Below, piece by piece: positions 6,201 through 36,740 of a stretch of 64,000 nucleotides of DNA. Source of the stretch: Malacoraja senta (lineage: Eukaryota); assembly GCA_038087875.1 (NCBI GenBank), contig JAXLNO010004071.1, forward strand, positions 62,001 to 126,000. Reading direction: 5' to 3'. The translations under genes and the position numbers were made by a program. The notes under the pieces are model-generated. The model searched no databases and was not told the origin of the DNA. It was given only the letters and a program-made list of their open reading frames with translations. How positions within the stretch are numbered: the stretch's first letter is position 1; each line of letters starts with the position of its first letter.

Positions 6201-6459
6201 GGCCTCACACACTCCTATTACTACACCCTGAACCACGGGAGTACTCATCTACCGGAATATAGTGTCGTGGGTGTTCTGGACGGTTGTGAGATACAGTATT
6301 ATGACAAAAACATGGTCATTACAGTTCCAAGACAGAAATGGATGGCGGCTGCATTTGACAGGAATTACCGGGTAACAAATACGGTCTCTGAAACTGGTTT
6401 CCATGGAATCATCAAAGGGCAAGTCGATGAATGGACGCGGAGGCAGAATGAAACAGCAA
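6201..6459 (+). CDS. MHC class I-like heavy chain, alpha1 exon (apparent 2-bp frameshift near 6215)
   Basis: Acceptor TCTAG at 6200 and phase-1 donor GTTAGT at 6460. Encodes ...YYYTLNHGSTHLPEYSVVGVLDGCEIQYYD...PRQKWM...NY...RRQNETA, with class I alpha1 spacing (W51 to Y59, Y59 to N86) and an N86 sequon. Confidence 0.9.
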
Positions 6460-7338
6460 GTTAGTTCATTCATTTCTATACATTTGGAGTGTGATCAATG
6501 TTCATAAAAAAACATCTCAAAGAAATTTCTCGCTGTGCCAGAAACCCAGGTTTGATCCTGACTACACGTTCTCCCTGTGACCACAGATATTTCCTCCAGG
6601 TGCTCCGGTTTCGTCCCATATCTTGAAAACGTGAGAGTTTGTAGGTTAATTGGGCTCTGCAAATTACTCTTGTGTGCTGAGAATGGGTGAGAAAGTGGGA
6701 TTACATAGATGTGTAGGAAGGAACTGAAGATGCTGGTTTACAGCAAAGATAGGCACAATGTGCTGGAGTAACTCAGCGGGACAGGCAGCATCTCTGGATA
6801 CAAGGAATGGATGACTTTTCAGGTCAAGACCCTTCCTCAGACAGAGTGTTTCCCCTGACTTACTCCAGCATTTTGTGTCCATTTTGGGATAACATAGAAT
6901 TAGTGTGAAAGATGATCGATGGTTGGCATGGAATTGGTGGGCCGAATGGCCCGTTTCCATGCGGAGTCACTAACCTAAGAACTGCAGATGCTGCAAATGT
7001 GAAATAAAAACCAAAAATGCCATTGTCTGATGGCTTCATTGTCAGTTTATCACCATGGAAACCTGTCATTACCTTATCAGTGATACTCCCTATGTCCAAC
7101 CATGCCTCCCACTCCTGTCTGTAACTTACACATTCTCACAATTCTGAAGCATTAATTTTGTTTCTCTTTCCATAGGTTCTGTTGAACCTGCTGTGTGTTC
7201 CAGCATTTTACAAATAATTGAAATGATGGCGGCTTTTTGAATGGTTAAAATCCCTTGCGTACCTCACCAATTGTTTTTACTTTTATTGACAAATGTTGAA
7301 AGAAAAGTAGTGTGAAATATTTAAAGGATAACCTAAAT

Positions 7339-7558
7339 GGCATTGTGGTTCAGCCGTAGTGATACTGCTGTAGTGCCAGAGACCCAGGGTTGATCCTGGC
7401 CTCAGGTGCTGTCTGTACAGAGTTTGTACGTACTCCCCGTGACCTGCGTGGGTTTTCCCCGGATGCTCCGGTTTCCTCCCACACTCCAAGCCTGTATGCC
7501 AAAGGGGATCACTGGTCACTGTGGACTCTAAGGGCTGTTTTCGTGCTATATCTCTAAA
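7339..7558 (+). mobile_element. tRNA-derived SINE copy
   Basis: Same head, core and tail as 5536-5832, with internal deletions. Confidence 0.75.
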
Positions 7559-8599
7559 TTATCTTGGGCACCAATTGTAAAGTAAGCTGTCCAAATCCGT
7601 CTGCACCACACTTGTATATCCATATAAATTGCAATTGGACACGTTTTATATTGTAAATCAATAAGTCCTATCACCATTACTGTGTTAATTCAATGACATT
7701 CGTAGTGTACCATTGAACAAAGCAGGACTAGGCGTGAGGGAACCATTGTGAGGTGGGGGGTGGGGGGGGGGGACAAAGGAGGACCTGGTGTGGGAGCCTT
7801 GATAACTTTGTCGGTGCCCTTTATGTGAAGAATCTTGACATACGTTGGGTTTACAAAACAAAGAATTTCACTGTGACTTGTCACATGTCACTATAAAGTG
7901 TCATTCATTCATGATTAATTATTTCTGAAAACATTGCTTTTTGTTACCTCTTCGGTTACACATTAAACACATTATATTATTAATCTTTAACTGGACTAAA
8001 ACAGGGTGAGGGTACAAACAGGGAACAATACGTCAAAATATTATGCACTGGGCATAATTTCTATCAATTTTCCACATCTTGCAATATTTATTATTATTTT
8101 CAAATTATATGTGAATACATGTGAATGACGTTTATTACATTATCATCTGATTCATTGAACCATGTTTATTGAATCATATTGCCTTCAAAAATATTTTTTT
8201 TATTTGCATTATTTATGGTGCACATATTATCTGCAACATTGTTATGTTTATGAGATTTATGAGCATATTGTCGGGGCTCAAGGGTGTGAACAAGAGGGAG
8301 AGATTGGGCAAGCCAGGGCTTTATTCCATGGAGCACAGGAGGCTGAGGGGTGATCATATAGTGGTGCTTAAAATCATGAGGGGAATTGATAGACTGTATG
8401 CCCAGAGCCTTTTACCCAGAGAAGGGGAATAAAATAACCAGAGGACATGGGTTTAATGTGAGAGGGGGGAAGATTTAATTGGAACTTGGGGGCGATCTTT
8501 GTGCTCAGAGAGTGGTCAGCATATGGAATGACCTGCCAGAGAATGGAGTTGCGGCAGGTACAATAACAATATTTAAAAGACACATGGACAGGGACATGC

Positions 8600-9082
8600 A
8601 TAGGTAGATAAAAGTGCTGGAGAAACTCAGCGGGTGAGGCAGCATCTACGGAGCGAAGGAAATAGGCAACGTTTCGGGCCGAAAACCCTTCTTCAGACTG
8701 ATGTGAGGGTGGGTGGGAGGGGGGGGGGGGTGGGGCGCAGGAAGAAGAAAGGAAAAGGTGGAGCCAGTGGGCTGAGGGAGAGCTGAGTAGGGGAGGAGAA
8801 AGTAAGGACTACCTGAAATTAAAGAAGGCAATGTTCATACCGTTGGGGTGCAAACTGCCCAAGCGAAATATGAGGTGCTGCTCCTCCAATTTACGGTGGT
8901 CCTCACTCTGGCCATGGAGGTGGCCGAGGGCAGAAAGGTCGGATTTGGAATGGGAGGGGGGAGTTGAAGTCCTGATCCACCGGGAGATCAGGTTGGTTGT
9001 TGCGAACCGAGCGGAGGCGTTCGGCGAAACGATCGCCAAGCCTGCGCTTGGTCTCACCGATGTAGAGCAGCTGACATCTAGA
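8600..9082 (-). mobile_element. Penelope-like element 3' end: GIY-YIG C-terminus plus pseudo-LTR with hammerhead core
   Basis: ORF 8809..9111 ends HRKLEEQHLIFRLGSLHPNGMNIAFFNFR. CTGAAGA...GAAACGTT lies on the - strand at 8667-8696. Confidence 0.85.
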
Positions 9083-9988
9083 GAGAAACGTTTTGAATGA
9101 TGTCTACCCATTGCAGGGTAAATGGGACTAGCTTAAATGGGGTATCTTGATTAGCTTGGATACGTTGGGCCAAAGGGCTTGTTTCCCTGCTGTGTGACTC
9201 TCTATGACTGCTTATAGCAAAGAGCGCTGATGCCTCACAGCTCCAGTGATCCGTGTTCAATCATCTCCAGTGCAGTCTGTGTGGAGTATAAGCATTCTCC
9301 CTGTGACAATGTTTGTTCTCCAGTTTCCTCCCACATACCAAAATGTGCTGATTTAGTAGATTAAGCCACCGCTGCAAATAGGTGGATTTGTGGCATTGAT
9401 AGAAATGAGGAAGATCCGTTTTGGGGGAAATTAGTGGTGGAATGGTTTTGTTCTCTGGGCTAGAGTGGGCTCAGGAGGCTGAAAGGCCTCTTTCTCTGTC
9501 ACATGGATTGATGGGCAGTTATTTATCCTTGAACTGCCTTCTTTCTCATTTTAGTCAACAGTGTAAAATTGAAGTAATTGTCTGGATTGAACTATTTAAC
9601 AATTGTAGATGAAAGGAAGAGCAGAGGCTGCTTTCCTCCACACACAAAGTGCTAAGGAACTCAACGGGTCAAGTGGCATCTTTGGAGAACATGGGAAGGC
9701 AGATATTCCGCGTGAGGATCCTACTTCAGACTGAAGTTGGGTCACATTAGAACATGCTTTGTACTCACACTCGCAGTCCAGTGTTAGTTTTCAAGGATTT
9801 TTTGTTATTCACAGCTTGTAGTTGTTACATATTCAGCAGAGAGAAGACGAGACAAACTAAAGCACCTGCAAAACACAACTAAAAGACCGCAGAAAGAAGC
9901 TTGAAAAGAAGGCTCTTATCTAAACAACGTACTTTCAAGAGAGAGTTAGATTTAGCTCTTAAGGCTAAAGGAATCAAGGGATATGGGG

Positions 9989-11754
9989 AAAAGATTAGTT
10001 AAAACAAATGTAGGTCCCTTGCAGTCAGAAACAGGTGAATTGATCATGGGGAACAAGGACATGGCAGACCAATTGAATAACTACTTTGGTTCTGTCTTCA
10101 CTAAGGAAGACTTAATTAACTGCCGAAAATAGCAGGGGACCGGGGCTCAAATGAGATGGAGGAACTGAGTGAAATCCAAGTTAGCCGGGAAGTGGTGTTA
10201 GGTAAATTGAATGGATTAAAGGCCGATAAATCCCCAGGGCCAGATAGGCTGCATCCCAGAGTACTTAAGGAAGTAGCCCCAGAAATAGTGGATGCATTAG
10301 TGATAATTTTTCAAAACTCTTTAGATTCTGGAGTAGTTCCTGAGGATTGGAGGGTACCTAATGTAACCCCACTTTTTAAAAAGGGAGGGAGAGAGAAAAC
10401 GGGGAATTACAGACCAGTTAGTCTAACATCGGTAGTGGGGAAACTGCTAGTCAGTTATTAAAGATGGGATAGCAGCACATTAGGAAAATGGTGAAATCAT
10501 TGGACAAAGTCAGCATGGATTTATGAAAGGTAAATCATGTCTGACGAATCTTATAAAAAATTTCGAGGATGTAACTAGTAGAGTGGATAAGGGAGAACCA
10601 GTGGATGTGTTATATCTGGACTTTCAGAAGACTTTCGACAAGGTCCCACATAAGAGATTAATATACAAACTTAAAGCACACGGTATTGGGGGTTCAGTAT
10701 TGATGTGGATAGAGAACTGGCTGGCAGACAGGAAGCAAAGAGTAGGAGTAAACGGGTTCAGAATGGCAGGCAGTGACTAGTGGGGTACCGCAAGGCTCAG
10801 TGCTGGGACCCCAGCTATTTACAATATATATTAATGATTTGGACGAGGGAATTGAATGCAACATCTCCAAGTTTGCGGATGACACGAAGCTGGGGGGCAG
10901 TGTTAGCTGTGAGGAGGGTACTAGGAGGCTGCAAGGTGACTTGGATAGCCTGGGTGAGTGGGCAAATGCATGGCAGATGCAGTATAATGTGGATAAATGT
11001 GTGGTTATCCACTTTGGTGGCAAGAACAGGAAAGTAGACTATTACCTGAATGGTGGCCGATTAGGAAAACGGGAGATGCAACGAGACCTGGGTGTCATGG
11101 TACACCAGTCATTGAAAGTAGGCATGCAGGTGCAGCAGGCAGTGAAGAAAGCGAATGGTATGTTAGCATTCATAGCAAAAGGATTTGAGGAGCAGGGAGG
11201 TTCTACTGCAGTTGTTCAGGGTCTTGGTGAGACCACACCTGGAGTATTGCCTACTGTTTTGGTCTCCTAATCTGAGGAAGGACATTCTTGCCATAGAGGG
11301 AGTACAGAGAAGGTTCACCAGACTGATTCCTGGGATGTCAGGACTTTCATATGAAGAAAGACTGGATAGACTCGGCTTGTACTCGCTAGAATTTAGAAGA
11401 TTGAGGGGGGATCTTATAGAAACTTACAAAATTCTTAAGGGGTTGGACAGGCTAGATGCAGGAACATTGTTCCCGATTTTGGGGAAGTCCAGAACAAGGG
11501 GTCACAGTTTAAGGATAAAGGGGAAATCTTTTAGGACTGAGATGAGAAAAACATTTTTTACACAGAGAGTGGTGAATCTCTGGAATTCTCTGCCACGGAA
11601 TGTAGTTGAGGCCCGTTCATTGGCTATACTTAAGAGGGAGTTAGATGTGGCCCTTGTGGCTAAAGGGATCAGGGGTTATGGAGAGAAGGCAGGTACAGGA
11701 TACTGAGTTGGATGATCAGCCATGATCATATTGAATGGCGGTGCAGGCTCGAAG
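9989..11754 (+). mobile_element. 5'-truncated CR1 ORF2 (RT), frameshifted; 3'UTR cut short
   Basis: KSPGPD, NYRPVSLTS, YLDFQKTFDKVPH, GVPQGSVLGP and KFADDTK motifs across ORFs 10156-11706. Confidence 0.95.
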
Positions 11755-12942
11755 ACTTTCAGAAGGCTTTCGACAAGGTACCACATAAGAGATTAGGATA
11801 CAAACTTAAATCACACGGTATTGGGGGTTCAGTATTGATGTGGATAGAGAACTGGCTGGCAAACAGGAAGCAAAGAGTAGGAGTAAACGGGTCCTTTTCA
11901 CAATGGCAGGCAGTGACTAGTGGGGTACCGCAAGGCTCAGTGCTGGGACCCCAGCTATTTACAATTTATATTAATGATCTGGACGAGGGAATTGAAAGCA
12001 ACATCTCCAAGTTTGCGGATGACACTAAGCTGGGGGGCAGTGTTAGCTGTGAGGAGGATGCTAGGAGATTGCAAGGTGACTTGGATAGGCTGGGTGAGTG
12101 GGCAAATGTTTGGCAGATGCAGTATAACGTGGATAAATGTGAGGTTATCCACTTTGGTAGCAAAAACGGGAAGGCAGACTATTATCTAAATGGTGGCCGA
12201 TTAGGAAATGGGGAGATGCAGCGAGACCTGGGTGTCATGGTACACCAGTCATTGAAAGTAGGCATGCAGGTGCAGCAGGCAGTGAAGAAAGCGAATGGTA
12301 TGTTGGCCTTCATAGCAAGAGGATTTGAGTATAGGAGCAGGGAGGTTCTACTGCAGTTGTACAGGGTCTTGGTGAGACCACACCTGGAGTATTGCGTACA
12401 GTTTTGGTCTCCAAATCTGAGGAAGGACATTATAGCCATAGAGGGAGTGCAGAGAAGGTTCACCAGACTGATTCCTGGGATGTCAGGACTTTCATATGAA
12501 GAAAGACTGGATAGACTTGGCTTATACTCGCTAGAATTTAGGAGATTGAGAGGGGATCTTATAGAAACGTACAAAATTCTTATGGGGTTGGACAGGCTAG
12601 ATGCAGGAAGATTGTTCCCGATGTTGGGGAAGTCCAGGACAAGGGGTCACAGCTTAAGGATAAGGGGGAAATCCTTTAAGACCGAGATGAGGAAAAACTT
12701 TTTCACACAGAGAGTGGTGAATCTCTGGAACTCTCTGCCACAGAGGGTAGTTGAGGCCAGTTCATTGGCTATATTTAAGAGGGAATTAGATGTGGCCCTT
12801 GTGGCTAAAGGGATCAGGGGGTATGGAGAGAAGGCAGGTACGGGATACTGAGTTGGATGATCAGCCATGATCGTATTGAATGGCGGTGCAGGCTCGAAGG
12901 GCCGAATGGCCTACTCCTGCACCTATTTTCTATGTATCTATG
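11754..12942 (+). mobile_element. Second 5'-truncated CR1 directly in tandem; open RT C-terminal frame
   Basis: Restarts at DFQKAFDKVPH and runs through FADD to GYGEKAGTGY*, then the 3'UTR and TTCTATG-like tail. Further tail fragments extend to about 13105. Confidence 0.95.
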
Positions 12943-13587
12943 AAGGGCCGAATGGCCTTCTCCTGCAACTATATTCTGTGTTTCTATGTTTCTAAAAGCA
13001 GGAATGGGTTACTGATTCTAGATGCAGGCATGATCATATTGAATGGCGGTGCTGGCTCAAATGGCCGAATGGCCTATTCCTGTGCCTATTTTTCTATGTT
13101 TCTATAATTAGTATACATTCGGCTAATTGTGGTGTTTCTTGAAAACACGAAAACGAGAGAATGTAAAGGATCTGCAGAACAACTAAAAGACTGCAGAAAG
13201 CAGCTTGAAAAGGAGGCTCTTCATCTATACAACATAAGTATGTTTTATTCAGCTATCATTGTTTGTAGAGTTTCTTATTGGAATGAAAACATCATCCAAG
13301 TTTTGACCCTTCCTTGTTACTCCTGGTCCCAGGGGAATGGTTGGCATTAGCTCATTACCTTCATCCTAATAAAGGGTTGTTGTTCACAGTTGTGCCTAGG
13401 TTTTTATCAGTTATAACCTTGAGTTCACAAACTGTTCTTTGTCTGGGCTAAAGTTCACAGACTCTCCTTTTCAAGGAGTGAGCAGTTTTAAGCAAACTGA
13501 CTTCAGCAAATCCTTACAAATTCCATCACCCCCCCCCCCCACTTTGATTCATCAATCAATGCCAGAGGGAATGAATCATCTAAGTAA

Positions 13588-14269
13588 AGGGGCCTGTCCC
13601 ACTTACGTGTCCTTGGCACGCATATTACGCGTTGAGCCACGATGGTCCGGCGAAGGTCGGGCGCGATTACATGCGTACGTACAGCCGTCTGGAGCGCGTG
13701 ACGTCATTTGAAGATGGACACAAAGCTGGAGTAACTCAGCGGGATCGGCAGCATCTCTGGAGAGAAGGAATAGATGACGTTTCATGTCGAGACTCTTCTT
13801 CAGTCTGAAAAGAAGGGTCTTGACCCGAAACATCACCCATTGCTTCTCTCCAGAGATGCTGCCGGTCCCGCTGAGTTACTCCTGCATTTCGTGTCTATCT
13901 TCAATTTTCTTGGCCCCGCTCTGGGAGTAGAAGTGGGGGCGGATCTGGACCGCAACGGCCGTGAGCCCCAGGCCGAGTTCGGCGATCGTTTGCCTGCTTC
14001 TGCTCCTGTTGAAAGTGAGACTTTGCGTCGCGCCAGGGTCTTGGGCCTGTCCCACTTTGGCCGTCAGTTCCGCGACAGGCCGTTGGCGCGCGAAGGTTTC
14101 GTTCACTACAAAATTATTGGAGCCCCGCGCGATGTCGCGCACAACTACATACCCCTCCGCGCTTCTCAGTGAGACCGGTCCCGCGCGGCCATACGATGCC
14201 CGTGAGCCTCAACGCGACCACGAGGTCGCATAATTTGTGTGCCAAGGACACGTAAGTGGGACAGGCCCT
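13588..14269. mobile_element. PIF/Harbinger-type MITE with about 42-bp TIRs and TAA TSD
   Basis: Left end AGGGGCCTGTCCCACTTACGTGTCCTTGGCAC; right end GTGCCAAGGACACGTAAGTGGGACAGGCCCT. TAA at 13585-13587 and 14270-14272. Confidence 0.8.
13710..13902. mobile_element. Palindromic Penelope pLTR-derived element nested in the MITE
   Basis: About 93-bp inverted arms centred on TTCAGTCTGAA (13799-13809). Confidence 0.8.
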
Positions 14270-15292
14270 TAAAAATACCAAGGAAGGGTAGCGCAGCTAC
14301 ACATCACTGGATATCTTTAACCTGTTCAATCACTGGATATCTTTAACCTGTTCAATGCCACCGCCGAGTACACTAAGGATCATGGCCAATAGTGAAAAAT
14401 AAACTTGGCAGTGAACAGCTTAATGGTCTCCATATTTTAGAGAAAGCCTTCAATGCCCATGAGGGGTGAGCCTTATTATATCTATGTTTCTCTAAATATA
14501 GGAAGCACTTTTGTGGTAAAAGATGGGGCAGCTCGGGCCTCGAAAAGATCCAACCTTATGTGCAGCTTTACATTTGTTTATATGCAATAAGCAAAAAGAA
14601 CACAATAGAAGATAAAACATGATAATAACTATAAGCAAAGCCAAGAGATCGTGGCCTTACACGAGTTGCTGCCTTGCAGCACCTGAGACCCGGGTTTGAA
14701 CCTGACTACGAGTGGTGACTGTACGGAGTTTGCATGTTCTCCCCGTAACCTGTGTGGCTTTTCTCTGAGATGTAGGTAAATTGGCTTGGTATAATTGTAA
14801 ATTGTCCCTAGTATGGGCTGAAGGGCCTGTTTCAGCAATGTATCTCCAAAGCAGTGGTTCTTAACCTGGGGGTCATGACCCCCACGGGGGTCACTTGGGG
14901 GTTTTCCGGGGGTCATGAAGGGGTTGTAAAGAACATCAATTTGTTGAGCCTATTTTGAGGAACCTAACAAAGGTACATACCACACACAGTATTTTGTTCA
15001 CGAATGCGCGTACGTATACACAGGGCCTATGAGAGGGGGGTGCAGGGGGTACATCGTACCCGGGCCCAGAGTCCAATAGGAGCCCGGGAGCTGAAGGAGG
15101 GGGGGTGGGAATTTCGTGAAATCTCAGAAAATGTTTGCATATATTTTGTGAAGACTAGCATTCACATTTTGTGCCTTCAGAGTTTTATATATCGTAATTC
15201 GTAGAAATTGTGATCCATAATATAGCAGGGAATTTTAACTGGCGGGTGTGTGGTCGGGGTAACCTGATTAAAAGAGGGGGAAGGGGAAGAAC

Positions 15293-15540
15293 CATCACTA
15301 CTCATGGGTCTTCCCTGTAGGAGGAGGGAGAGCACTAGGACCCAACAGAGTCATCACTACTGATGGATCTTCCCTGTAGGACAAGAAGGGGGGAGAGCAC
15401 TAGGACCCAGCAGAGTCATCACTACTGATGGATCTTCCCTGTAGGAGAAGGAGGGGGGAGAGCACTAGGACCCAGCAGAGTCATCACTATTGATGGGTCT
15501 TCCCTGTAGGAGGGAGGGGGGGAGCACTAGGAACCAGCAA
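15293..15540. repeat. 60-65 bp tandem repeat, 4 copies
   Basis: CATCACTACTGATGGATCTTCCCTGTAGG...GAGCACTAGGACCCAGCAGAGT starts near 15293, 15352, 15417 and 15482. Confidence 0.85.
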
Positions 15541-16020
15541 TCAGACCATGTGCTGTCTGCATGGTTTAGGTTGTGGGCCTGGTGCTATGCTGGGAACTCT
15601 GGTGAGGTGACGGGTCTGGCCCGCTGGTGGCCGGTGGAGAGGCGAGGGTCGGCAGAGTCGCTGGTGGAGGCCCGTGGGGAGCTGGAGTAGAGATATGGGC
15701 AGCAGCATCATTGGCTTTCTGAAGACAGTGAAGGTCGGCGACAGTGGCTGCGGTGGCCTCGCCCGGGGAGGTGGTGAGAGTCGGCAGCCGCGTCTGTTTC
15801 AGTGGTCCGGGCCTGGGTTTGGGTCAGTGTGTGGATGGGTGTGTGTGAGTGAGTGGGTGAGGGTGTGTGTATGTGTGTGGATGTGTGTGGCTGAGTGCGT
15901 GGGTGAGGGTGTGTGTATGTGTGTGGGTGTATGTGAGTAGGTGAGTGAGTGTGTGTCTGAGTGTATGTGTGTGTTAGTGGGAGGGTGAATTTTATAAATG
16001 AAGTTAAAACCATTAGATCT

Positions 16021-17182
16021 AATAATAATAATAATAATAGATTTTATTTATATAGCGCTTTTCAGGACTCAAAGTCGCTTTACAATTGAGAGTCAGGAAT
16101 AAACAAAACAAAATAGAGCAGTAAGACAAAGGGGGGGGGGGAACATGGGACTAAGGGTATGCAGAGGTGAAGAGATGGGTCTTGAGGCGGGACTGGAAGA
16201 TGGTGAGGGACTCAGAATTTCGGACCGGTTGTGGGAGGGAATTCCAGAGCCTGGGAGCTGCCCTGGAGAAGGCTCTGCCTCCAAAAGTGCAGAGGTTTGA
16301 TTTCGGAGTGGAGAGGAGACCAGCTGATGTGGATCTGAGGGACCGTGAGGGTTGGTAGGGGGAGAGGAGGTCAATGAGATAAGGGGGGGCCAGGTTGTTG
16401 AGGGCTTTGTAGGTGAGGACCAGGATTTTGTAGGTGATCCGGTGGGAAATGGGAAGCCAGTGAAGTTCTTTGAGAACTGGGGTGATGTGGTGCCAGGATT
16501 TGGTGTGGGTAATGAGTCGAGCGGCTGCATTTTGGACCAGTTGAAGTCGTTTGATGCTGCTGGAATTGATTCCGAAAAGAAGAGAGTTACAGTAGTCCAG
16601 TCGGGAGGAGATGAAGGCATGGATGAGTCTTTCAGCAGCGGGGGGTGTGAGAGACGATCTGATTTTTGCAATGTTGCGGAGGTGAAAAAAGGATGTTTTG
16701 ACAACATGGCGGATGTGAGGCTCAAGGGAGAGGGTTGAGTCAAGGATCACGCCAAGGTTGCGTGCCTGAGGAGATGGGGAGACAGTGGTGCCGTCGATAG
16801 TGAGAGTGGGGTTGTTAATTTTAGTGAGTGTTGATTTGGAGCCAATGAGGAGAAATTCTGTTTTGCTACTGTTTAATTTAAGGAAGTTGAGTTGCATCCA
16901 AGATTTGATGGCTGATAGGCAGGAGTTGATATGGGAGAGAGGGGGGTGGTGGGGGGACTTGGTGCTGAGATAGATCTGGGTGTCATCAGCATAGCAGTGG
17001 AAGTCCAGGTTGAAGTGACGGAGTATATGACCAAGGGGGAGGATGTAGATGATGAAGAGGAGGGGACCAAGAACGGAGCCTTGGGGAACGCCTTGAGTGA
17101 CAGTGGCTGTGGCAGAGGTGTGGTTATGGAGAGAGATGAAGTGGGATCGGTTGGAAAGGTAAGAACGGAACCAGCTGAGTGC
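16021..17182 (-). mobile_element. 5'-truncated L2-type LINE
   Basis: ORF 16151..16897 (LKLNSSKTEFLL, RNLGVILD, SRLDYCNSLL, LQLVQNAAAR, AFSRAAPRLWNSLP) and an (ATT)n tail. AGATCT flanks both ends (16015-16020, 17183-17188). Confidence 0.92.
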
Positions 17183-22786: not shown

Positions 22787-23062
22787 ATTATCACTACGTT
22801 CAAGGACAGTTTGGTTGTGAGGTGGACGATCACAGTCCCACTGTAGGGATATTGAAGTTGGCTTTTGATGGAAGATATGCATTTAGTTTTGATAAGGACA
22901 AACTAAAGTGGACGGTGCATGATCCAATAGCTGAGCCCTTCAAAGAGAAATGGGACAAGAATGAAAAAATGAACCGTTATTTCAAGAGCTTGTTAGAACA
23001 TGACTGTGTGGATCTATGGCTTACATACTATGCAATTGGAAAGACATACATGACCAGAAAAG
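22787..23062 (+). CDS. MHC class I-like heavy chain, alpha2 exon
   Basis: TTTCAG acceptor and GTGAGT donor; 276 nt, phase 1-1. Encodes YHYVQGQFGC...AFDG...W...KEKWD...LLEHDCVDLWLTYY with the C101-C164 pair. Confidence 0.95.
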
Positions 23063-23720: not shown

Positions 23721-23721
23721 C

Positions 23722-25661: not shown

Positions 25662-25943
25662 GTTTTGGTTTAGTTTAGAGAAACAGGAACCTTGGGCCAC
25701 TGAGTCCACACTGACCAGCAATTGCCCATTCACTATTTCTGTCCTACACGCTAGGGACAATTTACAGAAGCCAATTAACCTGCATGTCTTTTGTATTTGG
25801 GAGGAAACCGGAGCCCCCAGAGAAAACCCACAGGGTGACAGAGAGAACGTACAAACTCCGTCCAGACAGCATTCTAGTCAGGATCAAACCCGGGTCTCTA
25901 ATGCTGTAAGACAGCCACTCTATCAATGTGCCTCTGTGTTGCC
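25662..25943 (-). mobile_element. tRNA-derived SINE copy
   Basis: Reverse complement of the HE1-like head, core and tail. Confidence 0.75.
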
Positions 25944-27811
25944 TTAGTTTAACTTGGTATCCTGTTCCACATGGACATTGCAGGCTGAAAGTCCTGTTCT
26001 TGTACTGTTCTATGTTCTATATATTCTCATTGGACAGGGCAGGGATATGTTTTCCACTCCTCCAGCCTCCAGGTTGAATACTTCCTCCCAGTTTAAATCT
26101 GATTCAATTAGTCAATCCATTTCTCCCTCCGCTCCTGCCCTGCTCCCCATTCTATATTTTGAAGTAGTCATTCCCTTTTTCGCTCCCTGGTCTGTCTACT
26201 ATCCCCACAACTTTCCTCTACTTTCCTGTCTTGGTGCAAGCAACATCCATCCATTTACCACTTTCCATAGACCCAGGCAGTTCTTCAAAGTGAAACAGCG
26301 TGAAACACAAGCACTTCCAGTCAAATCTACTACATTTAGTTTTCATTACGTAATCTTCCACAACGCATCAATGAAACAAATAGAATGGCTGCTTTCTGGA
26401 GAACCCGCATTCAATCCATGGGACTTTCTAAGATTCCTAATTCCTGCCACTCTAATTCTCCATTCAACACCCACCATGATCCATCCATCTGTACCTCTAA
26501 CACTAGGATAACAAGGGTGAAAGTAGCCTTGAGGACCAACAACTCAGCTTCTGTCTGGACATGTTGCAGCCTTTCAAACTCAATTCCACATTCAACGAGT
26601 TGCATTCCCTGTCGATAAAAGAACTGGTCATTTCAACTGTTAAGTTGAAGACAGAAAGACAAGATGCAAGAAGTATGAAGCAGGATCCCAAGCTGAAACA
26701 TTACGTAACCATGTCTTCCAGATGCTGCCTGAACCACTGAGTTACACCTGCACGTTTTTGTGTTTTTTTTAATTACAGTTAAGTTATCCACCTGCCAAAT
26801 CAGGACAGCCTGACCTACTTGAGTACTGCAGTATGTCTGCATTTTATATAACTCTGTTTAATTTCATGCATGCAGAGATGCAGTGAAATGGTTCGGATGG
26901 AACAGCAGATGCTGGACACCCCGTCCCTTCTCTCCAGAGATGCTGCCTGTCCCGCTGAGTTACTCCAGCTTTTTGTGTCTATCTGCAGTGAAATGGTTGT
27001 TCTGCATTCTCTCCAGTCAAGTCATACTGTACATAAGTACAATTCGTCCTCTTCTGGAAAAGCACGCAGAGATCCACCACATTTCAGGACTATCTTGCAG
27101 CTTCCAAGTCTCTGAAAAGTCTGATTTTGCCCCAAGGAAATACCCAATTTCTCATATTCTCATGTTAAGGCCCAGTGTCATAACAGCACTGGATTGATGA
27201 AGTAGAGGCGCCTGCCTCAGTTTAAGATTTTCTGTTTCAAGATGTGATCGAACCCTCGTCACTGGAATTGTGTCGCAGTGCCACCCATTACGTATCAGTC
27301 CCAATTATCTTTCAACATGCTGGAATCACTTGTTTTTTAATCCTTTTTAGACTTTTTTCATGAATTGTTCAGCATAAACAGTTATGCTACAACAGTTAAG
27401 CGCAGCTACCACTTAGTTCCAGAGACGTAACAACACAAGAGATAGTGTTGCAGGGCTCTCGCTTAACTTTTTTTCCCTGTTGCCAGCCGGGCAACCTCGG
27501 CAGCTTTTTAGGTTGCCAAATGACAGCTTAGGTGGTCATTTAAGATGGCTTGCATGACGCGTGCGATAATGTGCTCAGATGAAGTGCGTAGATACCAGTC
27601 AGAATTATGGTCAATGAAACATTCACATATTATTTCTGCTTCAAATAAAGTCACAAACTAAACATATTCACCAATGAAGACATGATATATACCACAATGA
27701 CATGCATCAAAATTACAATACAGTATCTCATCTCTGTTTACACGTTGCAATGAATGCAATTTATATTATCTCTTTCCACTTCCAAACAAAAATATGGTTA
27801 TTCAGCGTATG

Positions 27812-28268
27812 ATCAACCTCGGTGAGACCAAGCGCAGGCATGGCGATCGCTTCGCACAACACCTCCACTCAGTTCGCAATAACCAACTTGATCTCCTGGT
27901 GGCTCAGCACTTCAACTCCCCCTCTGATTCCGAATCCGACCTTTCTGTTCTGGGCCTCCTCCATGGCCAGAGTGAGGCCCACCGCAAATTGGAGGAACAG
28001 CACCTCATATTTTGCTTGGGTAGTTTACACCCCAGCGGTATGAACATTGGCTTCTCCAATTTCAGATAGTCCTTGCTTTCTCCCTCCCCCTGCCTCCCAT
28101 TCTCAGCTCTCCCACACCCTACTGTCTCTGCCTCTTCCTTTCTTTTTCGCCCCCCACCCCTCCCGACATCAGTCTGAAGAAGGGTCTCGACCCGAAACGT
28201 CACCTTTTTCCTTTGCTCCATAGATGCTGCCTCACCTGCTGAGTTTTTCCAGCATTTGTGTCTACCCA
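27812..28268 (+). mobile_element. Penelope-like element 3' end (GIY-YIG C-terminus plus pseudo-LTR)
   Basis: LGETKRRHGDRFAQHL...HRKLEEQHLIFCLGSLHPSGMN in ORF 27794..28069. Confidence 0.88.
28170..28204 (+). ncRNA. Minimal type I hammerhead ribozyme motif in Penelope pLTR
   Basis: CTGAAGA-A-GGGTC-TC-GACCC-GAAAC-GTC has the catalytic boxes, a perfect stem II, a palindromic ACGU helix III and a predicted cleavage site after C28201. Confidence 0.7.
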
Positions 28269-29930
28269 TTCACACAAGTTCTGTTATCCCACTTTCCTCA
28301 CCCACTCCTGCACATTAGGGGCAATTTTACAGAGACAAGTTAACCTACAAAGCCAATGCGTCTTTGGGATGTGGGAGGGAACCCACATGATTGCAGGGAG
28401 AATGTGCAAATTCAACACAGACAGTGCCCGAGAACAGGATCGAACACAGGTCTCTGGCGTGTGAGGCAGCAAATCCACCAGCTGTGCCATTATATTTTAT
28501 TTTCCAACACACAAAAAATTATACGTTGATAACTTTGGTTACTAAAAAAAAGAAACTATCCATTTTCAGTCTTAAATCTCTAAGTGACGCTATGTCCCAC
28601 TTTACAGCTACTGTATGCTTAAATCAGTTCAAGGATATTGGGGCAGTACATTGCCCATAAATTGGCTGCCTAATATTGCCAGAGACCCAGAATTGATCCT
28701 GAATATGGGTGCTGTCTGTGTGGAGTTTTGTTTTCTCGTTTATAACATTGTTTACAGAGTACTATGTTTACATATTCTGTTGTGCTGCTGCAAGTGAGGA
28801 TTTCATTGTTCTAACTGGGACGTGAGAGAATAAAACAGTCTTGACTTACGTTGCTGATGTGTGGGATAGAACTAGAGTACGGGTGATCGGTGGTCGGCGT
28901 GGACTCAGTGGGCCGAAGGGCCTGCTTCCACACTGTATCTTTAAATTAAACTAAAAACACTAAAACCAGAGGAAATGTAAAGAAGGGTTTCTACCAGAAA
29001 TGTCACCCAATTTTTTCTATCCAGAGATGCTGGCTGCTCCATGGAGTTCCCCCGCACAATTAAAGCATGGAATAGTTGTCACCCTACTATAGGTACCCAA
29101 CCAGACGCAACTAAATTTAAGGTAGTTTTTTTCCCCCAAGAACCCTTTTTTGCTTAAGTCCAAGTCAAGAGTCAAGAGAGTTTTATTGTCATGTGTCCCA
29201 GATAGGACAATGAAATTCTTGCTTGCTGCAGCACAACAGAATATGTAAACATAATACAGAACAGGAGATAAAAGTTCAGTGTGTCTCTATACTATAGACC
29301 ATATATATACACAATAAATAAACGGATAAAATGCAATAGGCTGTTATTTTTCAGTTTGGAGTTTGGTGGTGGTGGGTCCACCAGTTTAAATTCCATTTCG
29401 AATATTTTTGGAGGACCTGGAAACCAAGAAGCAAGACTTACTCCAGCTGATGCAGCGACCAGACAGCAATGGCGGCCAGAACTCCCACAATGCAAAGGGA
29501 GGGAGAAAGTGGCCGACGCCGACCAGTTGCCGTGGCAGTGCGCATGTGCAGGGCTCGGCGGCCGGCCTTGCTGAGCGGAACCCGAGACCTGGACACGGAT
29601 GGCGGGCGGGCAGGTGTCCCGGTTGCTTGCCAAGCCGGGCAAAATGGCATGGCTTTTAGGTTGCCATTGGCACCGGGCAACCGCTAATTTCGAGCCCTGT
29701 GTTGGAAGAATGATCAAACTCACACATAGTGGTTAAAATCCATAGTCTTTTATTAGTAACTCTGCAGAGGAAACACAAGGTGCTTTCTTCTCAGCATGCT
29801 TACTACCAGTCTACCAGAGAGAGAGATAGAGAGAGAGCTGTCTAATAAGCCTGTGGGCGGAGCCACAGTATGAGTGACACTAATCTACAGATAGGCACAG
29901 GGATAAGTTGCGGTTTATTATTGCCACGTT

Positions 29931-30198
29931 TAGTTTCGAGGTACAGCATGGAAATAGGCCCTTTGGCCCACTGAACCTGTGCTGACTAACGACCACCCAA
30001 ATATTAGTTCTATCCTACACACTAGGGACAATTTACAGAAGCCAAAAAACTTACAAACCTGCACGTCTTTGAATGTGACGGAACTGTAGCACCCGGAGAT
30101 AACTCGCATGGTCACAGGGAGAATATATGAACTCTATATAGACAGCACCCATTGTCAGCATTGAACTTTGGTCTGTAGTACTGTAAGGCAGCAACTTT
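29931..30198 (-). mobile_element. tRNA-derived SINE copy
   Basis: Reverse complement of the HE1-like SINE. Confidence 0.75.
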
Positions 30199-31485
30199 CC
30201 AGGTACAGTTCCATGATATCCAATTGGATGAGATAACGACATACATATATATGATCAAGTCAACTCAAGTACTGTAGGTAGAGCAAAGGGGAAGGTACAG
30301 ACTGTGGCATATAGTTCTCAGCAATGTAGCACACCAGTTCCATTAGATATGAGTTTCGACTCAAAACGTAACACATTCCTTCTCTCCAGAGATGCTGCCT
30401 GACCCGTTGAGTTACTCTAGTATTTTGTGTCTATCTGCGGTTTAAACCAGCATCTACAGTTCCTTCCTGCATAGTTCCATAAACAAAGTCCACTGTCTGT
30501 AATGGGGTAGTGGTCAATTGGACAGAACCCTAGCTTATGGAACGATCATTCAGAAGCCTGATTTTCTCCTCGGTTATCAAGTTTCTGAGTAAGCCATTTG
30601 GTCCTCTAACCTGCCCACCATTCAATATGACCATGGCTGACGTTCCTCAGGCATCAACTCCTGATCGGTGCCAGTTCCTCATTGCACTCAATTCTCCAAT
30701 CTTTCAAAAGTTTAACTACCGCCACATTAAATACTTCCAATGATTTTGTCTTCACAAATCTCTGGGGTCAAGAGCGCCAGAGAATGACCACACTCTGCAA
30801 AAAGAGATTTTGTAAACAAATGACTGGTCTCTTTTATCTCTTATTGAAGAGGAGAGAAAATACTGCCAATTTTAAGCTTGTCCCCTCCCCAATTGACCCT
30901 CATTTCGTAACTTGTCAATTATTTATTATTGTCAATAATATGCCATAGTGAAAAGATTTGCCGTTGGTATTAGTTTATTATTGTCACGTGAACTGAGATA
31001 TAGTCAAAAGTGTGTCTGTGTTATCCAATCAGATCATACTACACATGTGCAATCAAGCCATCCACAAGTAGAACAGTGCCAAGAAAAAAATACTCAGAGT
31101 GCAGAATATCGGGTTACAATATCATAGCATTACAGTTACAGAGAAAGTGCAGATCAAAAAGATTTGCAAGGATCACAATGAGATTGGTTGGAAGATCAGG
31201 GCAACATCTTATCTTACATGAGAATCATCCAGTAGTCCAATAACAGCGGGGAAGAAGCTGTTCCTGAATTTAATGGTACGTGCTTTCAAACTTTCTTGTG
31301 TACTGTCTTAACAGGGAGCGTACAATCCCTTTTAAACCACGTGGTTGGTTGATGGTGACGAAAGAGGCAAAATGGGGCAGATGTAGACAGTAACTTGGTG
31401 GTTGTAGTAGACTGAAGAATATTTTGTGGTGGGTGACTGTGCAAGTTTTACTGAAGATGAAAATAACCATCTTACTGTCTTGTAG

Positions 31486-31752
31486 TTTCCCCTGAGGTCA
31501 CTCTCGCTGCCCGCCCTGAAGATCATTCAGTCCTGTACTGCACTGTGTTTGGATTTTACCAACCGGCCATCAATGTCAGCTGGTTGCAGAATGGTCAACA
31601 TGTCTCTGAGACCAAATCTTCTGGGGTCATACCCAACAACGATGGAACATATCATCTAAAGTCTGTCCTTCAGTATGATCCGTATGATGGGAAACAGTAT
31701 TCCTGTCATGTCGATCACAGGAGCCTGCCCGGTGGGAAGACCATCATCTGGG
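31486..31752 (+). CDS. MHC class I-like heavy chain, alpha3 (Ig C1) exon
   Basis: TGTAG acceptor and GTAAGA donor; 267 nt, phase 1-1. Encodes VSPEV...LYCTVFGFYQPAINVSW...PNNDGTYH...YSCHVDHRSL...IIW. Confidence 0.95.
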
Positions 31753-32045
31753 GTAAGAACGTTAAATATTCTTTCATAGATAATCATTATCTTCTGTTGT
31801 ATCCATTTTAACCATTGTGACTACATCCCATATTCCAAGATGCTTAAACTTTCTTTGTTTAGTGGTTTTGCTCTAAGCAATCACATAATCAGCACCCACT
31901 CTCCACATGAGCAGAAGACTTTGTCAACAGAACATTTATCAAAAATAAATAAATAACTAATATACAAGGAAGGAGTATTTGAGATTCTCAGTGGTGGAAC
32001 TGAAATCCATGAAAGGTATGCTTAAATAATAAATGAATCTTTCCT

Positions 32046-35000
32046 CATGATGTGATTAACAGCAAGGCACTGGGGGAGTACATGCCCCAATGCGAATCAG
32101 TGGTCCAAAGTGGAAATGATTGAGAGCTTTGTGTTCCTTGGCATGAATATATCCAATATTCGGTCATGGACTGGCCACATAGCCAAGGGGGCACACCGAC
32201 ACCTCTACTTCCTCAGGAGACTGAGAATATTCATCATGTCTCTGGTGACTCCAGCAAACATCTATAGATGCTGCTAGAGACAGCATGTTGTTGGGTTGCA
32301 TCACATCTTGATTTGGGAACTGCACTGCCCAAGACTGCAAGAATATACAAAGAGTTAAAGATCATCACACAGGCCAGACTTCCCACTATTGATGGTTGCC
32401 TTGGATACCGAGACGTATCCCACCCCGGTCATTCCTCCTTCCTGCTCCCATCAGGCAATAGGTACAGAAAATTGAAAATATGCACTGCCAGACTCAGGAA
32501 CACCCCCTTTCCATCTCTTATCAGGCTTCAGAAGGGTCCTTCCATAATGTAGGTTTAATGCCCGATTCACCTCAACCTCATTGCACATTGAACATTGTCT
32601 ATGGAACTGATGCGTTACAATGCTGAGAACTATATTCTGTACTCTGTATCCTCCTCTTTGCTCTATCTATTGTTTTTTAGTTTTTTATTTATCTATAGTA
32701 TTATCTAATTTGTTTGGATAGCATACAAAACAAACCTTTGCACTATCTTGAAACATCTGGCATTAATAAAACTAAACCTAATGAAGTAAGTTCTGTGACG
32801 CAAGTTACAGCTTCAGCAACAAAAAAATATAACTGCCTGACAAACAGCGATCGTAGTAGTTTGATTCCAGGTATGCTGCACTAACCCACACAAATGTTCA
32901 CTTTTGAAGATTCCCTCGAACAATGCACAAATAAGGAATCTGATGTTTCACTCTGAAGACTGTTGACATACTCCAGAACTTAATTTTCAACCTATCTATG
33001 TATCATCAGCAATCTAGGCTACAGCACCACCAGGCCCTTCATCTGCTCTTAATACTAACGATAAGTAGTTCACTTTCTTGCATTGATTCCCATCCTGCAG
33101 TTGCAGTTTCCCAACTTAAACACTCCTTTAAGACTCTGCTTGCTCTTAATTGTTTTTCCATTCATGCTAATTATTACCCCCAATGTCATAAGCCATTTGC
33201 CTTTGCATCACTTGATCAGATATCTTATGAAAATCCAGATATTCTGGCGACATCTGGTGGTCAGGCCACTTATTGCTAGAACCCTCGTCAGGGGAGCAGG
33301 GACTATCATGTGACAGGGTTTTGGTGGGAGTTGGTGATGAGTTAATCGCCAGTCAACTGGTGCGCCCGATTATAACGGTGGGAACTTTGCTCAAGTCCTT
33401 ACTAAACGCGAGTGGGCCAAAACTGTATTTCTTAAAAAAACATTGATTTGTTCACGACGCTTGGATCTCTACAATATATTGTATTTCTTTTGTTTCTCAT
33501 TCCAATTTTGTTACCTATTCTGCTTTTCCATCATTTTGTTTTTAAATTTTAGGCTGTGCACACCTGCAAACTACTGCTGCTCAAATATACATTGTCTACG
33601 GGTTCCTGTTGCATTTTCAAAGAATTCTAATCAATTTCTCAAACAAAGTTTGAAGAAGGGTCCGTAAACGAAATGTCACCTGTCCATGTGTAGGGAGAAA
33701 TTGCAAATGCTGGTATACACCGAAGATGGACACAAATTGCTGGAATAACTCAGCTGGTCAGGCAGCATTTCTGGAGAAAAGGAATAGGTGATGTTTCGGG
33801 TCACGATCCTTCTGACTGAGTCCATGTTCGCCAGAGATGTTGCCTATTCCGCTCAGTAACTCCAGCATTTTGTGTCTATCATGTATATTCTTTCCACTGA
33901 CTGGTTAGCATGAAACAAAAGCTTTTCACTGCACCTCAGTACTCGTGACAATAAACTAAACTAAAGCTTTTGTATAAATCAGTATCTGCATCTCTTTCTT
34001 TCTACAATTTTCCTGTTAATGCACTTTATTGTTTTGTTATTACTTAAATGTTCTGCCATTACTGAAAGGAATCCAACATTTTCCCCAAAACAGATGATAG
34101 TTTATATAGGGTTAAAGCTTTCTGCTTTCAATTCACCTTCTTTCTTGAATTAAGTTGTGGCTGTGATGGTGCCATAGATCATAGAGTTGTACAGAACATA
34201 TATTGTCCCTTTGCCATGTTGCAGAACTCCATGATGTGATTAACAGCAAGGCACTGGGGGAGTACATGCCCCAATGCGAATCAGTGGTCCAAAGTGGAAA
34301 TGATTGAGAGCTTTGTGTTCCTTGGCATGAATATATCCAATATTCGGTCATGGACTGGCCACATAGCCAAGGGGGCACACCGACACCTCTACTTCCTCAG
34401 GAGACTGAGAATATTCATCATGTCTCTGGTGACTCCAGCAAACATCTATAGATGCTGCTAGAGACAGCATGTTGTTGGGTTGCATCACATCTTGATTTGG
34501 GAACTGCACTGCCCAAGACTGCAAGAATATACAAAGAGTTAAAGATCATCACACAGGCCAGACTTCCCACTATTGATGGTTGCCTTGGATACCGAGACGT
34601 ATCCCACCCCGGTCATTCCTCCTTCCTGCTCCCATCAGGCAATAGGTACAGAAAATTGAAAATATGCACTGCCAGACTCAGGAACACCCCCTTTCCATCT
34701 CTTATCAGGCTTCAGAAGGGTCCTTCCATAATGTAGGTTTAATGCCCGATTCACCTCAACCTCATTGCACATTGAACATTGTCTATGGAACTGATGCGTT
34801 ACAATGCTGAGAACTATATTCTGTACTCTGTATCCTCCTCTTTGCTCTATCTATTGTTTTTTAGTTTTTTATTTATCTATAGTATTATCTAATTTGTTTG
34901 GATAGCATACAAAACAAACCTTTGCACTATCTTGAAACATCTGGCATTAATAAAACTAAACCTAATGAAGTAAGTTCTGTGACGCAAGTTACAGCTTCAG

Positions 35001-36419
35001 CAACAAAAAAATATAACTGCCTGACAAACAGCGATCGTAGTAGTTTGATTCCAGGTATGCTGCACTAACCCACACAAATGTTCACTTTTGAAGATTCCCT
35101 CGAACAATGCACAAATAAGGAATCTGATGTTTCACTCTGAAGACTGTTGACATACTCCAGAACTTAATTTTCAACCTATCTATGTATCATCAGCAATCTA
35201 GGCTACAGCACCACCAGGCCCTTCATCTGCTCTTAATACTAACGATAAGTAGTTCACTTTCTTGCATTGATTCCCATCCTGCAGTTGCAGTTTCCCAACT
35301 TAAACACTCCTTTAAGACTCTGCTTGCTCTTAATTGTTTTTCCATTCATGCTAATTATTACCCCCAATGTCATAAGCCATTTGCCTTTGCATCACTTGAT
35401 CAGATATCTTATGAAAATCCAGATATTCTGGCGACATCTGGTGGTCAGGCCACTTATTGCTAGAACCCTCGTCAGGGGAGCAGGGACTATCATGTGACAG
35501 GGTTTTGGTGGGAGTTGGTGATGAGTTAATCGCCAGTCAACTGGTGCGCCCGATTATAACGGTGGGAACTTTGCTCAAGTCCTTACTAAACGCGAGTGGG
35601 CCAAAACTGTATTTCTTAAAAAAACATTGATTTGTTCACGACGCTTGGATCTCTACAATATATTGTATTTCTTTTGTTTCTCATTCCAATTTTGTTACCT
35701 ATTCTGCTTTTCCATCATTTTGTTTTTAAATTTTAGGCTGTGCACACCTGCAAACTACTGCTGCTCAAATATACATTGTCTACGGGTTCCTGTTGCATTT
35801 TCAAAGAATTCTAATCAATTTCTCAAACAAAGTTTGAAGAAGGGTCCGTAAACGAAATGTCACCTGTCCATGTGTAGGGAGAAATTGCAAATGCTGGTAT
35901 ACACCGAAGATGGACACAAATTGCTGGAATAACTCAGCTGGTCAGGCAGCATTTCTGGAGAAAAGGAATAGGTGATGTTTCGGGTCACGATCCTTCTGAC
36001 TGAGTCCATGTTCGCCAGAGATGTTGCCTATTCCGCTCAGTAACTCCAGCATTTTGTGTCTATCATGTATATTCTTTCCACTGACTGGTTAGCATGAAAC
36101 AAAAGCTTTTCACTGCACCTCAGTACTCGTGACAATAAACTAAACTAAAGCTTTTGTATAAATCAGTATCTGCATCTCTTTCTTTCTACAATTTTCCTGT
36201 TAATGCACTTTATTGTTTTGTTATTACTTAAATGTTCTGCCATTACTGAAAGGAATCCAACATTTTCCCCAAAACAGATGATAGTTTATATAGGGTTAAA
36301 GCTTTCTGCTTTCAATTCACCTTCTTTCTTGAATTAAGTTGTGGCTGTGATGGTGCCATAGATCATAGAGTTGTACAGAACATATATTGTCCCTTTGCCA
36401 TGTTGCAGAACTCCATGAT
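32046..36419. repeat. 2184-bp direct tandem duplication (32046-34229 / 34230-36413)
   Basis: Identical ORF translations offset by exactly 2184 bp (32268/34452, 32998/35182, 33083/35267, 33443/35627). CATGAT occurs at all three boundaries. Confidence 0.97.
32050..32780 (+). mobile_element. Rex1/Babar-like LINE 3' fragment (duplicated at about 34234-34964)
   Basis: Decayed coding sequence resembling LYFLRRLR...IYRCC.E....GCIT..FGN...LLPSG.RYR, typical of the Rex1 RT C-terminus. Confidence 0.65.
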
Positions 36420-36632
36420 TCAAAACAACATATTTATATATGTTGAAAAGTGCCAAAGATAGACACAAAATGCTGGAGTAACTCAGTGGTCAGGTAGCAT
36501 CTCTTGAGAAAAGAAATAGGAGGCATTTCGGGTCGAGACCCTTCTTCACCCTGAAGTCTTCAGACAGTGCCAATCTATTTAGCTGCACAGCTTAACAAAT
36601 GATATGTAAAATTATGCATTCTTATTTTTCAG

Positions 36633-36740
36633 AAGGAAATGGGAAGAAAGACAGGCACATAGGCCTTATTGCCGTGTGTGTGCTGATATTGCTGGCTATT
36701 GTCTTGGCAGTAATTGTTTGGTGGAGAAAAAAGAGGAGAG
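36633..36740 (+). CDS. MHC class I-like heavy chain, connecting peptide/transmembrane exon
   Basis: TTTTTCAG acceptor and GTAAGA donor; 108 nt, phase 1-1. Encodes EGNGKKDRHIGLIAVCVLILLAIVLAVIVWWRKKRR, a hydrophobic span followed by a basic stop-transfer signal. Confidence 0.9.

Follow-up and report, generated by a model that had tools for sequence, protein, structure and literature searches.

A probably inactivated skate copy of the MHC class I-like gene UGA in Malacoraja senta

Gene layout in the window

The window, that is, the whole 64,000-nucleotide stretch of Malacoraja senta DNA analyzed here, contains exons 2 to 6 of a UGA gene; the leader exon lies upstream, outside the window (Table 1). 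Collinearity with the comparison loci L001 and L005 suggests that the leader is some 10-20 kb away from the upstream edge. No flanking gene was found inside these 64 kb. The alpha1, alpha2, alpha3, and transmembrane (TM) exons had been placed correctly on the + strand by an earlier, sequence-only reading, and all four have canonical AG/GT splice sites. That exon set was nevertheless incomplete: besides the leader, it lacked the last coding exon, which encodes DYQNIQPKQNVHC followed by a stop, with DYQNI at 49816-49830.

Skate orthologues, listed under automatic names, are found in Amblyraja radiata (XP_032898133.1), Leucoraja erinacea (XP_055521885.1), and Rhinoraja longicauda (P0168). They share 89-92% protein identity with the window, the same six exons, and collinear introns of 85-92% identity. 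The Leucoraja-type gene was seen as spliced mRNA in two cDNA contigs (L002 and L004), in which the homologous exons are joined at exactly the predicted borders, including that from the TM exon to the last exon. In intron 3 of the window, moreover, a 2,184-bp segment that Amblyraja has once is exactly duplicated in tandem.

Table 1. Coordinates of the UGA exons, splice sites, and private changes in the window
Feature	Position	Strand	Details
Alpha1 exon, UGA lineage	6201..6459	+	259 bp vs 261 bp in all orthologues; E 1.6e-33 to 9CH4_A
Alpha1 splice sites	acceptor AG 6199-6200, donor GT 6460-6461	+	canonical
2-bp deletion plus substitution	6213..6214	+	orthologues ACTGATCTAT, window ACTCCTAT; alignment to Amblyraja
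Premature TAG	6260..6262	+	in frame with a leader exon ending in phase 1
Private W60R	CGG 6369..6371	+	TGG in orthologues and read contigs
Alpha2 exon	22787..23062	+	276 bp, phase 1 to phase 1; Pfam MHC_I E 4e-13
Private L176M in alpha2 exon	ATG 23050-23052	+	comparison with orthologues
Alpha3 (C1-set) exon	31486..31752	+	267 bp; Pfam C1-set E 5e-19
Private Pro>Gln in FYP motif, alpha3 exon	CAA 31560-31562	+	comparison with orthologues
Connecting-peptide plus transmembrane exon	36633..36740	+	108 bp; RKKRR at end
Last coding exon	49816..49856	+	(D)YQNIQPKQNVHC plus TAA; Tyr-x-x-Ile sorting-type motif

HLA numbering was mapped via nurse shark UAA (6LUP) and verified on 16 landmark residues. On this numbering, the residues listed by the sequence-only reading were all recovered: the fold hallmarks N86 (NET), C101/C164, and the alpha3 Cys pair; the retained anchors Y7, Y59, R84, K146, W147, and Y171; the replacements T143F, Y159L, W167L, W60R, 123A, D122Y, and Q115K; and the DGC cysteine in alpha1, FYQ in alpha3, and a cysteine in the TM segment.

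Assignment to the UGA lineage

Sequence comparison identifies the gene as a skate member of UGA, a previously described MHC class I-like lineage of sharks and rays. Each extracellular exon, searched singly, matched chain A of PDB entry 9CH4 (E = 1.6e-33, 1.1e-34, and 8.8e-34), and the next class I chains in these exon-wise searches followed at only 1e-6 to 1e-12. This entry bears the title "Crystal structure of shark nonclassical MHC CLASS I, UGA," and the whole of 9CH4 aligned with a Stegostoma orthologue (P0176; E = 7e-170). In a tree built without named UDA or UFA references and without CD1 sequences, the window fell inside a shark-and-ray clade of 16 rows that has an SH-aLRT of 100. Its branching order among the skates is (Rhinoraja,(window,(Amblyraja,Leucoraja))). 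UAA together with the sequences derived from it formed a separate clade, far from this one. The anchor string in the window, YYRAFKWLY, follows the UGA pattern YY-x-[AIV]-[FLM]-K-W-L-Y, which is present in the window and 13-15 orthologues, and not the classical YYR[FY]TKWYY, of whose nine anchors the window keeps six. With the 9CH4 protein, a nurse-shark-type UGA, the window shares the clade, the anchors, the DGC cysteine (lineage-wide as well), K115/Y122, and a short Yxx[IV] tail common to the whole UGA clade. Residue 84, in contrast, is R in skate UGA and Q, K, or E in sharks. Grouping with the 9CH4 protein, the groove signature, and a short tail on a separate last exon were thus all found. 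The sequence-only reading had called the gene nonclassical, which the 9CH4 matches, the tree, and the anchor pattern bear out; its statement that the lineage could not be assigned is superseded, since the exon matches, the tree, and the title of 9CH4 all give UGA.

It is extremely unlikely that the gene instead belongs to classical UAA, to UDA, or to a previously unseen class I lineage. Such a reading could draw on the six retained classical anchors, which classical UAA (6LUP, Triakis Trsc-UAA) has in common with skate UGA together with the fold hallmarks and exon phases. Against it stand an identity to UAA of only 31-36%, a UAA clade that lies apart in the tree, a closest solved structure that bears the name UGA, and the replacement of T143, Y159, W167, and F123 in the window. 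The sequence-only reading had proposed a phylogeny as its own check, and the outcome did not refute its nonclassical call: the window lies outside the UAA clade, and a proper alignment does not restore T143 or Y159. As to the named lineages, classical UAA was rejected on the six of nine anchors and this position in the tree. UDA, which is reported to retain eight of the nine anchors, was rejected on the anchor count (six here). UEA was rejected because it is reported to be confined to sharks. UFA was also rejected as the identity of the window gene.

As regards linkage to the MHC, the chromosome-scale contigs listed for UGA and for UAA-type proteins are of equal length in each of seven further species. 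In the portion of the Verissimo 2023 supplement covered here, genes bear only the label "MHC-Ib," and no table is for a skate.

Reading frame, private changes, and read contigs

The alpha1 exon is 261 bp long in Amblyraja, Rhinoraja, Leucoraja, and the two cDNA contigs, and in the skate orthologues the frame that starts in the leader stays open; the 259 bp of the window reflect a complex change, GAT to C, and not a homopolymer slip. At this site, ACTGATCT is the form without the deletion and ACTCCTAT the form with it. The leader donor is of phase 1 in three skate genera and in cDNA, and the leader phase of the window copy is taken from these orthologues, its own leader exon being outside the window. 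From a phase-1 leader, the frame into the window alpha1 exon reads PHTLLLLHPEPREYSSTGI, and the 2-bp loss therefore brings the true frame to a stop at the premature TAG; with 2 bp lost at mature codons 5-6, translation would end 20 codons into alpha1. Read in phase 0 from 6201, the entire alpha1 exon is free of stops. Because this open frame, which the sequence-only reading used, begins exactly at the splice site, the frameshift was hidden, and the "spliced product" described there is not confirmed as intact. No frame-restoring cryptic acceptor was seen near alpha1 when the sequence was read by eye, use of any acceptor further upstream is barred by a TAG that stands in frame at 6198-6200, and no alternative first exon was found in the 6.2 kb upstream of alpha1 within the window. 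The alpha2, alpha3, TM, and tail exons are open, with all splice sites intact. Given the deletion and the stop, and with the leader phase of the orthologues, the open frame from leader through tail that marks a functional gene was not found.

Three replacements, W60R, FYP>FYQ, and L176M, are private to the window and fall at sites invariant in 13-16 orthologues, the other skates each having 0-1 changes of this kind; UGA elsewhere lacks both these replacements and the frameshift. As judged from the alignments, they look like decay and not like design. The window branch carries 11 nonsynonymous to 3 synonymous changes, compared with 13:10, 17:12, and 17:14 on other branches, an excess that is not significant (Fisher p = 0.15), and the pairwise dN/dS values of the window (0.37-0.56) lie within the range of other skate pairs.

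The sequencing-run records list no run as RNA, and the library type of the read contigs is not stated. Because the flanks are repeats that drew more than 100,000 contigs, depth is uninterpretable. An intact version, about 98% identical to the window, is present in public runs (X4 and X5), and the alpha1 sites 6254, 6369, 6436, and 6449 tell it from the window version: read contigs carry intact GAT, TGG (W60), and ATG (M80) codons, and a contig of run X5 differs from the window by an AT put in behind 6214 and by 6214 C>G. Run X4 contains two versions that differ by about 2%, and a 101-nt contig from this run is identical to the window, two window-private bases included, so that the window haplotype is real. 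X4 could be the source sample, and an assembly error at 6213/6214 is possible; no contig was found that unambiguously spans this site with the deletion, the X4 evidence being no more than a depth of 25 for sequence lacking the insertion.

The frameshift, together with the replacements at invariant sites, makes a recently inactivated copy or null allele the most likely reading, and we regard the window as probably holding exons 2-6 of such a disabled UGA. It is rather unlikely that the gene is an intact and working UGA, the missing 2 bp being a fault of assembly or consensus or else offset by a different first exon, and the private substitutions being tolerated alleles. The open exons 3-6, the canonical splice sites, the unraised pairwise dN/dS, the frame open from 6201 across alpha1, and the want of an independent read clearly showing the deletion all speak for it. 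Yet the lesion is complex and coincides with the three private replacements at invariant sites, the X4 contig matches the window haplotype including other private bases, the phase-1 leader donor is conserved in three genera, and the TAG ahead of alpha1 bars an upstream acceptor. The co-occurrence of two versions in X4, along with three UGA copies in sawfish, would also suit a diverged UGA paralogue with a new role, an altered groove rim (R60) and alpha3, and a first exon of its own. This is quite improbable, as the 6.2 kb upstream hold no such exon and the private changes lie in structural residues, namely W60 and the proline of FYP, and not in variable ones that face the ligand. Similarly slim is the chance that the copy is live via an unseen phase-0 first exon and yields a second UGA-type molecule of skates; in such a young paralogue, R60 on the alpha1 helix, a different N-terminal strand, and the altered alpha3 would shift ligand or receptor contact.

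Groove, tail, and meaning of a probably disabled UGA copy

UGA is an already named nonclassical lineage with a solved structure, and the groove features seen here are not new. Its lineage-wide signature consists of F/L/M143, L159, L167, A/I/V123, K115, and Y122, with Y7, Y59, K146, W147, and Y171 kept. The "remodelled groove" of the sequence-only reading is therefore real at 143, 159, and 167 and at 115, 122, and 123 but is UGA-wide, while W60R and FYQ are private to this copy. Mean Kyte-Doolittle hydrophobicity at groove positions is 0.45 in UGA versus -0.08 in classical molecules. An intact UGA would be a class I heavy chain of the beta2-microglobulin type, in which Phe, Leu, and Ala in place of T143, Y159, W167, and residue 123 would yield an aromatic and aliphatic groove floor and may favor a hydrophobic ligand. 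The nonclassical ligand suggested from the sequence fits the lipid binding, of CD1d type, that a review citing a personal communication reports for UGA (PMC12562908). A literature search found no primary paper on UGA lipid binding, the basis being this review and the PDB title.

The skate UGA tail reads RRDYQNI, a CD1b-like motif, and extends 8 residues beyond the Yxx[IV] motif. The CD1b tail contains YQNI. CD1b/c/d resemble UGA in having a class I-like heavy chain, a hydrophobic groove, a cytoplasmic Tyr-x-x-hydrophobic motif, and reported lipid ligands, and the Tyr-x-x-Ile/Val of the short UGA tail may route the protein through endosomes, as in CD1b/c/d. CD1 nonetheless lacks Y7, Y59, K146, W147, and Y171, all five of which UGA keeps. 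After 9CH4, the best matches by structure and sequence were chicken BF2, shark UAA, ZAG, and MR1, not CD1, and the 50 best Foldseek hits to a model of the Amblyraja orthologue (of moderate quality, pLDDT 69) included no CD1 entry.

In annotation, the locus should appear as a UGA copy with a frameshift or as a null allele and not as a new antigen-presenting gene. What had appeared to be a remodelled groove is for the most part a set of characters typical of UGA, an old class I lineage that would present lipids and not peptides and that skates carry with a CD1b-like sorting tail. Disabled and intact versions only about 2% apart could help to find out if skates can do without UGA or differ in its copy number.

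An expressed class I lineage already named UGA

For each extracellular exon of the window gene, the best match among solved chains was 9CH4_A (E 1.6e-33, 1.1e-34, and 8.8e-34), whereas the next class I chains, including those of shark UAA (6LUP) and MR1, matched only at E 1e-6 to 1e-12. The entry is titled "Crystal structure of shark nonclassical MHC CLASS I, UGA" (release 2026-03-18; retrieved by Foldseek with the model of the Amblyraja orthologue), and 9CH4 matches the zebra shark orthologue P0176 over its full length (E 7e-170). In a maximum-likelihood tree of 53 class I proteins, the window product fell inside a 16-row clade (SH-aLRT 100), nested as (Rhinoraja,(window,(Amblyraja,Leucoraja))). 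The sequence-only reading had called the gene non-classical, which these matches and this position bear out, and had held that its lineage could not be assigned by eye; the same evidence assigns it to UGA. Placement within classical UAA, which would have told against that reading, does not hold: all UAA and UAA-derived sequences formed a clade apart, and the window product was 31-36% identical to UAA proteins. The gene is almost certainly a member of the UGA lineage, a family that database searches recovered, always under automatic names, from skates, sawfish, stingrays, manta, and at least seven shark genera.

Sister to the UGA clade (SH-aLRT 95) was another class I-like gene, represented by Leucoraja protein P0015. 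This very different gene (36% identical to the window product) is probably a neighbour of UGA in Leucoraja; its recorded contig equals in length the one that carries a UGA copy (JAMYXN010000384.1), and it comes under the next accession number. Seven species (sawfish, horn shark, basking shark, Mustelus, Hemitrygon, Mobula, and zebra shark) have their UGA and UAA-type proteins listed on chromosome-scale contigs of equal length, a pattern that would fit MHC linkage of UGA there; in Amblyraja the listed contigs are of unlike length (40.6 Mb and 33.3 Mb).

Two cDNA contigs of the Leucoraja-type gene, L002 (3,455 nt, SRR11241640) and L004 (1,435 nt, SRR13269316), each hold a complete 334-residue frame in which the homologous exons abut at exactly the predicted borders. 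The other outcome that would have counted against the sequence-only reading, exons left unjoined in cDNA, is thus dismissed for the lineage, with RNA from relatives rather than from the window copy itself.

Gene structure and surroundings

Features of the window. The first four exons listed were located by stop-to-stop ORF listing and by reading the DNA.
Feature	Position	Strand	Remarks
alpha1 exon	6201-6459	+	canonical AG/GT borders
alpha2 exon	22787-23062	+	canonical AG/GT borders; phase 1; Pfam MHC_I, E 4e-13
alpha3 exon	31486-31752	+	canonical AG/GT borders; phase 1; Pfam C1-set, E 5e-19
TM exon	36633-36740	+	canonical AG/GT borders; phase 1
Fifth coding exon	49816-49856	+	(D)YQNIQPKQNVHC then TAA; cctcag acceptor; found by tblastn with the closest full-length relative
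LINE-type retrotransposon copy	9988-12942		RVT_1 and endonuclease-RT domains
LINE-type retrotransposon copy	40625-44235	minus	RVT_1 and endonuclease-RT domains
LINE-type retrotransposon copy	45480-48105		RVT_1 and endonuclease-RT domains
Run of 158 N	54046-54203
Endogenous retrovirus, gamma-retrovirus type	about 58810-63735	minus	several separate ORFs

The fifth coding exon, absent from the earlier model, lies 13 kb beyond the TM exon. A Pfam search of the exons did not recognize alpha1, which is too divergent for the model. Nothing similar to the leader exon was found within the 64-kb window; judging from two collinear skate loci, its expected place is 10-20 kb or so upstream of position 1.

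No further cellular gene was found in the window, the remainder of which is transposon sequence. LINE-type copies occupy the introns and 3' flank; those at 10-13 kb and 45.5-48.1 kb belong to one family, with several copies also in the Amblyraja and Leucoraja loci. The retroviral ORFs encode Gag_p30 with a zinc knuckle, protease and RT, RNase H, and a TLV_coat-type env fragment. Within the alpha3-TM intron, 32046-36419 is an exact tandem duplication (100% identical, period 2,184 bp) whose homologue occurs only once in the Amblyraja locus (L001, 75728-78418), so that it is either a very recent event or an assembly artefact. In Rhinoraja, UGA is followed about 9 kb downstream by a GPR139-like receptor gene (L003, 50032-50927), which several automatic Leucoraja gene models (P0152 and P0173 among them; at most 663 residues) fuse to UGA; no copy was found in the 14 kb that follow UGA in the window.

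A 2-bp lesion in alpha1 and a second, intact version

The alpha1 exon measures 261 bp in three skate genomes and both cDNA contigs, as against 259 bp in the window, where alignment places the change at 6213/6214 (orthologue ACTGATCTAT, window ACTCCTAT). The leader exon of Amblyraja, Leucoraja, and Rhinoraja ends in GCAG/GTAAGT or GCCG/GTAAGT (the slash marking the exon border), that is, in phase 1, and in a skate mRNA contig the junction is CTTGCAG/GGCCTCACACACTGATC. With the leader phase taken from these orthologues, the window frame runs PHTLLLLHPEPREYSSTGI and then meets a stop at 6260-6262. The frame read earlier, GLTHSYYYT, is in phase 0 and starts exactly at the acceptor, just past the in-frame TAG of the splice site, and the exon therefore looked open. 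Because that TAG sits in the splice site, an upstream acceptor offers no rescue, and the only AG in the exon's opening 40 bases is out of frame.

With changes polarized against Rhinoraja, the window branch carried 11 non-synonymous and 3 synonymous changes (other branches, 13:10, 17:12, and 17:14), an excess that is not significant (Fisher p = 0.15). Three replacements fell at residues invariant in 13-16 orthologues (W60R, L176M, and the proline of the C1-set FYP motif), compared with 0-1 in each of four other skate sequences. Pairwise dN/dS was 0.37-0.56, no higher than for other skate pairs. Gene death, if real, is recent.

Contigs from two public sequencing runs, X4 and X5, bear on the same exon; these are Logan contigs, and their depth table was swamped by repeat-rich flanks. 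An X5 contig (6084-6265) has AT inserted behind 6214 together with C>G at 6214, giving the intact GAT version. At four sites, X4 and X5 contigs show the ancestral base: T at 6369 (TGG, W60), T at 6436 (M80), A at 6254, and C at 6449. A 101-nt X4 contig (6407-6507) matches the window without a difference and carries its private bases 6436C and 6449T. There is thus a second version that differs by about 2%, is intact at these sites, and in X4 occurs beside the window's version. No contig among those aligned to the window clearly spans the deletion at 6213/6214. The two versions are either alleles or recent duplicates. The window gene is real, and it is probably a recently frameshifted copy or null allele.

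Groove residues, tail motif, and likeness to CD1

HLA numbering was mapped onto nurse shark UAA by landmarks and verified on 16 known residues; under it, every substitution named in the sequence-only reading proved correct. At nine anchor positions (7, 59, 84, 123, 143, 146, 147, 159, and 171), the residues are YYR[FY]TKWYY in classical molecules, shark to alligator, YY[RQKE][AIV][FLM]KWLY in UGA proteins, and YYRAFKWLY in the window. T143F, Y159L, W167L, 123A, Y122, K115, and the DGC cysteine are common to the whole UGA clade. Over 42 groove positions, UGA is somewhat more hydrophobic than classical molecules (mean Kyte-Doolittle 0.45 versus -0.08), with a conserved Phe/Leu/Ile set at 70, 73, 74, 99, 114, 116, 118, 124, 143, 156, 159, 160, and 167.

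UGA and UFA are described in a 2025 review as CD1-like genes, single- or low-copy, that occur in sharks and rays, and the review gives as a personal communication that lipid ligands are indicated by crystal structure and mass spectrometry (PMC12562908); a literature search found no primary paper on UGA. Nearly all UGA members carry Tyr-x-x-Ile/Val at the cytoplasmic end, as DYQNI in skates and AYNAV, GYNVI, or DYNTV in sharks. Motifs of the Tyr-x-x-hydrophobic type route CD1b/c/d through endosomes. The UGA tail thus resembles those of CD1b/c/d in motif type, although CD1 was missing from the best structural matches to the Amblyraja orthologue model (Foldseek). Because its tail motif is of the endosomal type of CD1b/c/d, the UGA lineage plausibly works like CD1, a proposed likeness of function of which orthology to CD1 forms no part.
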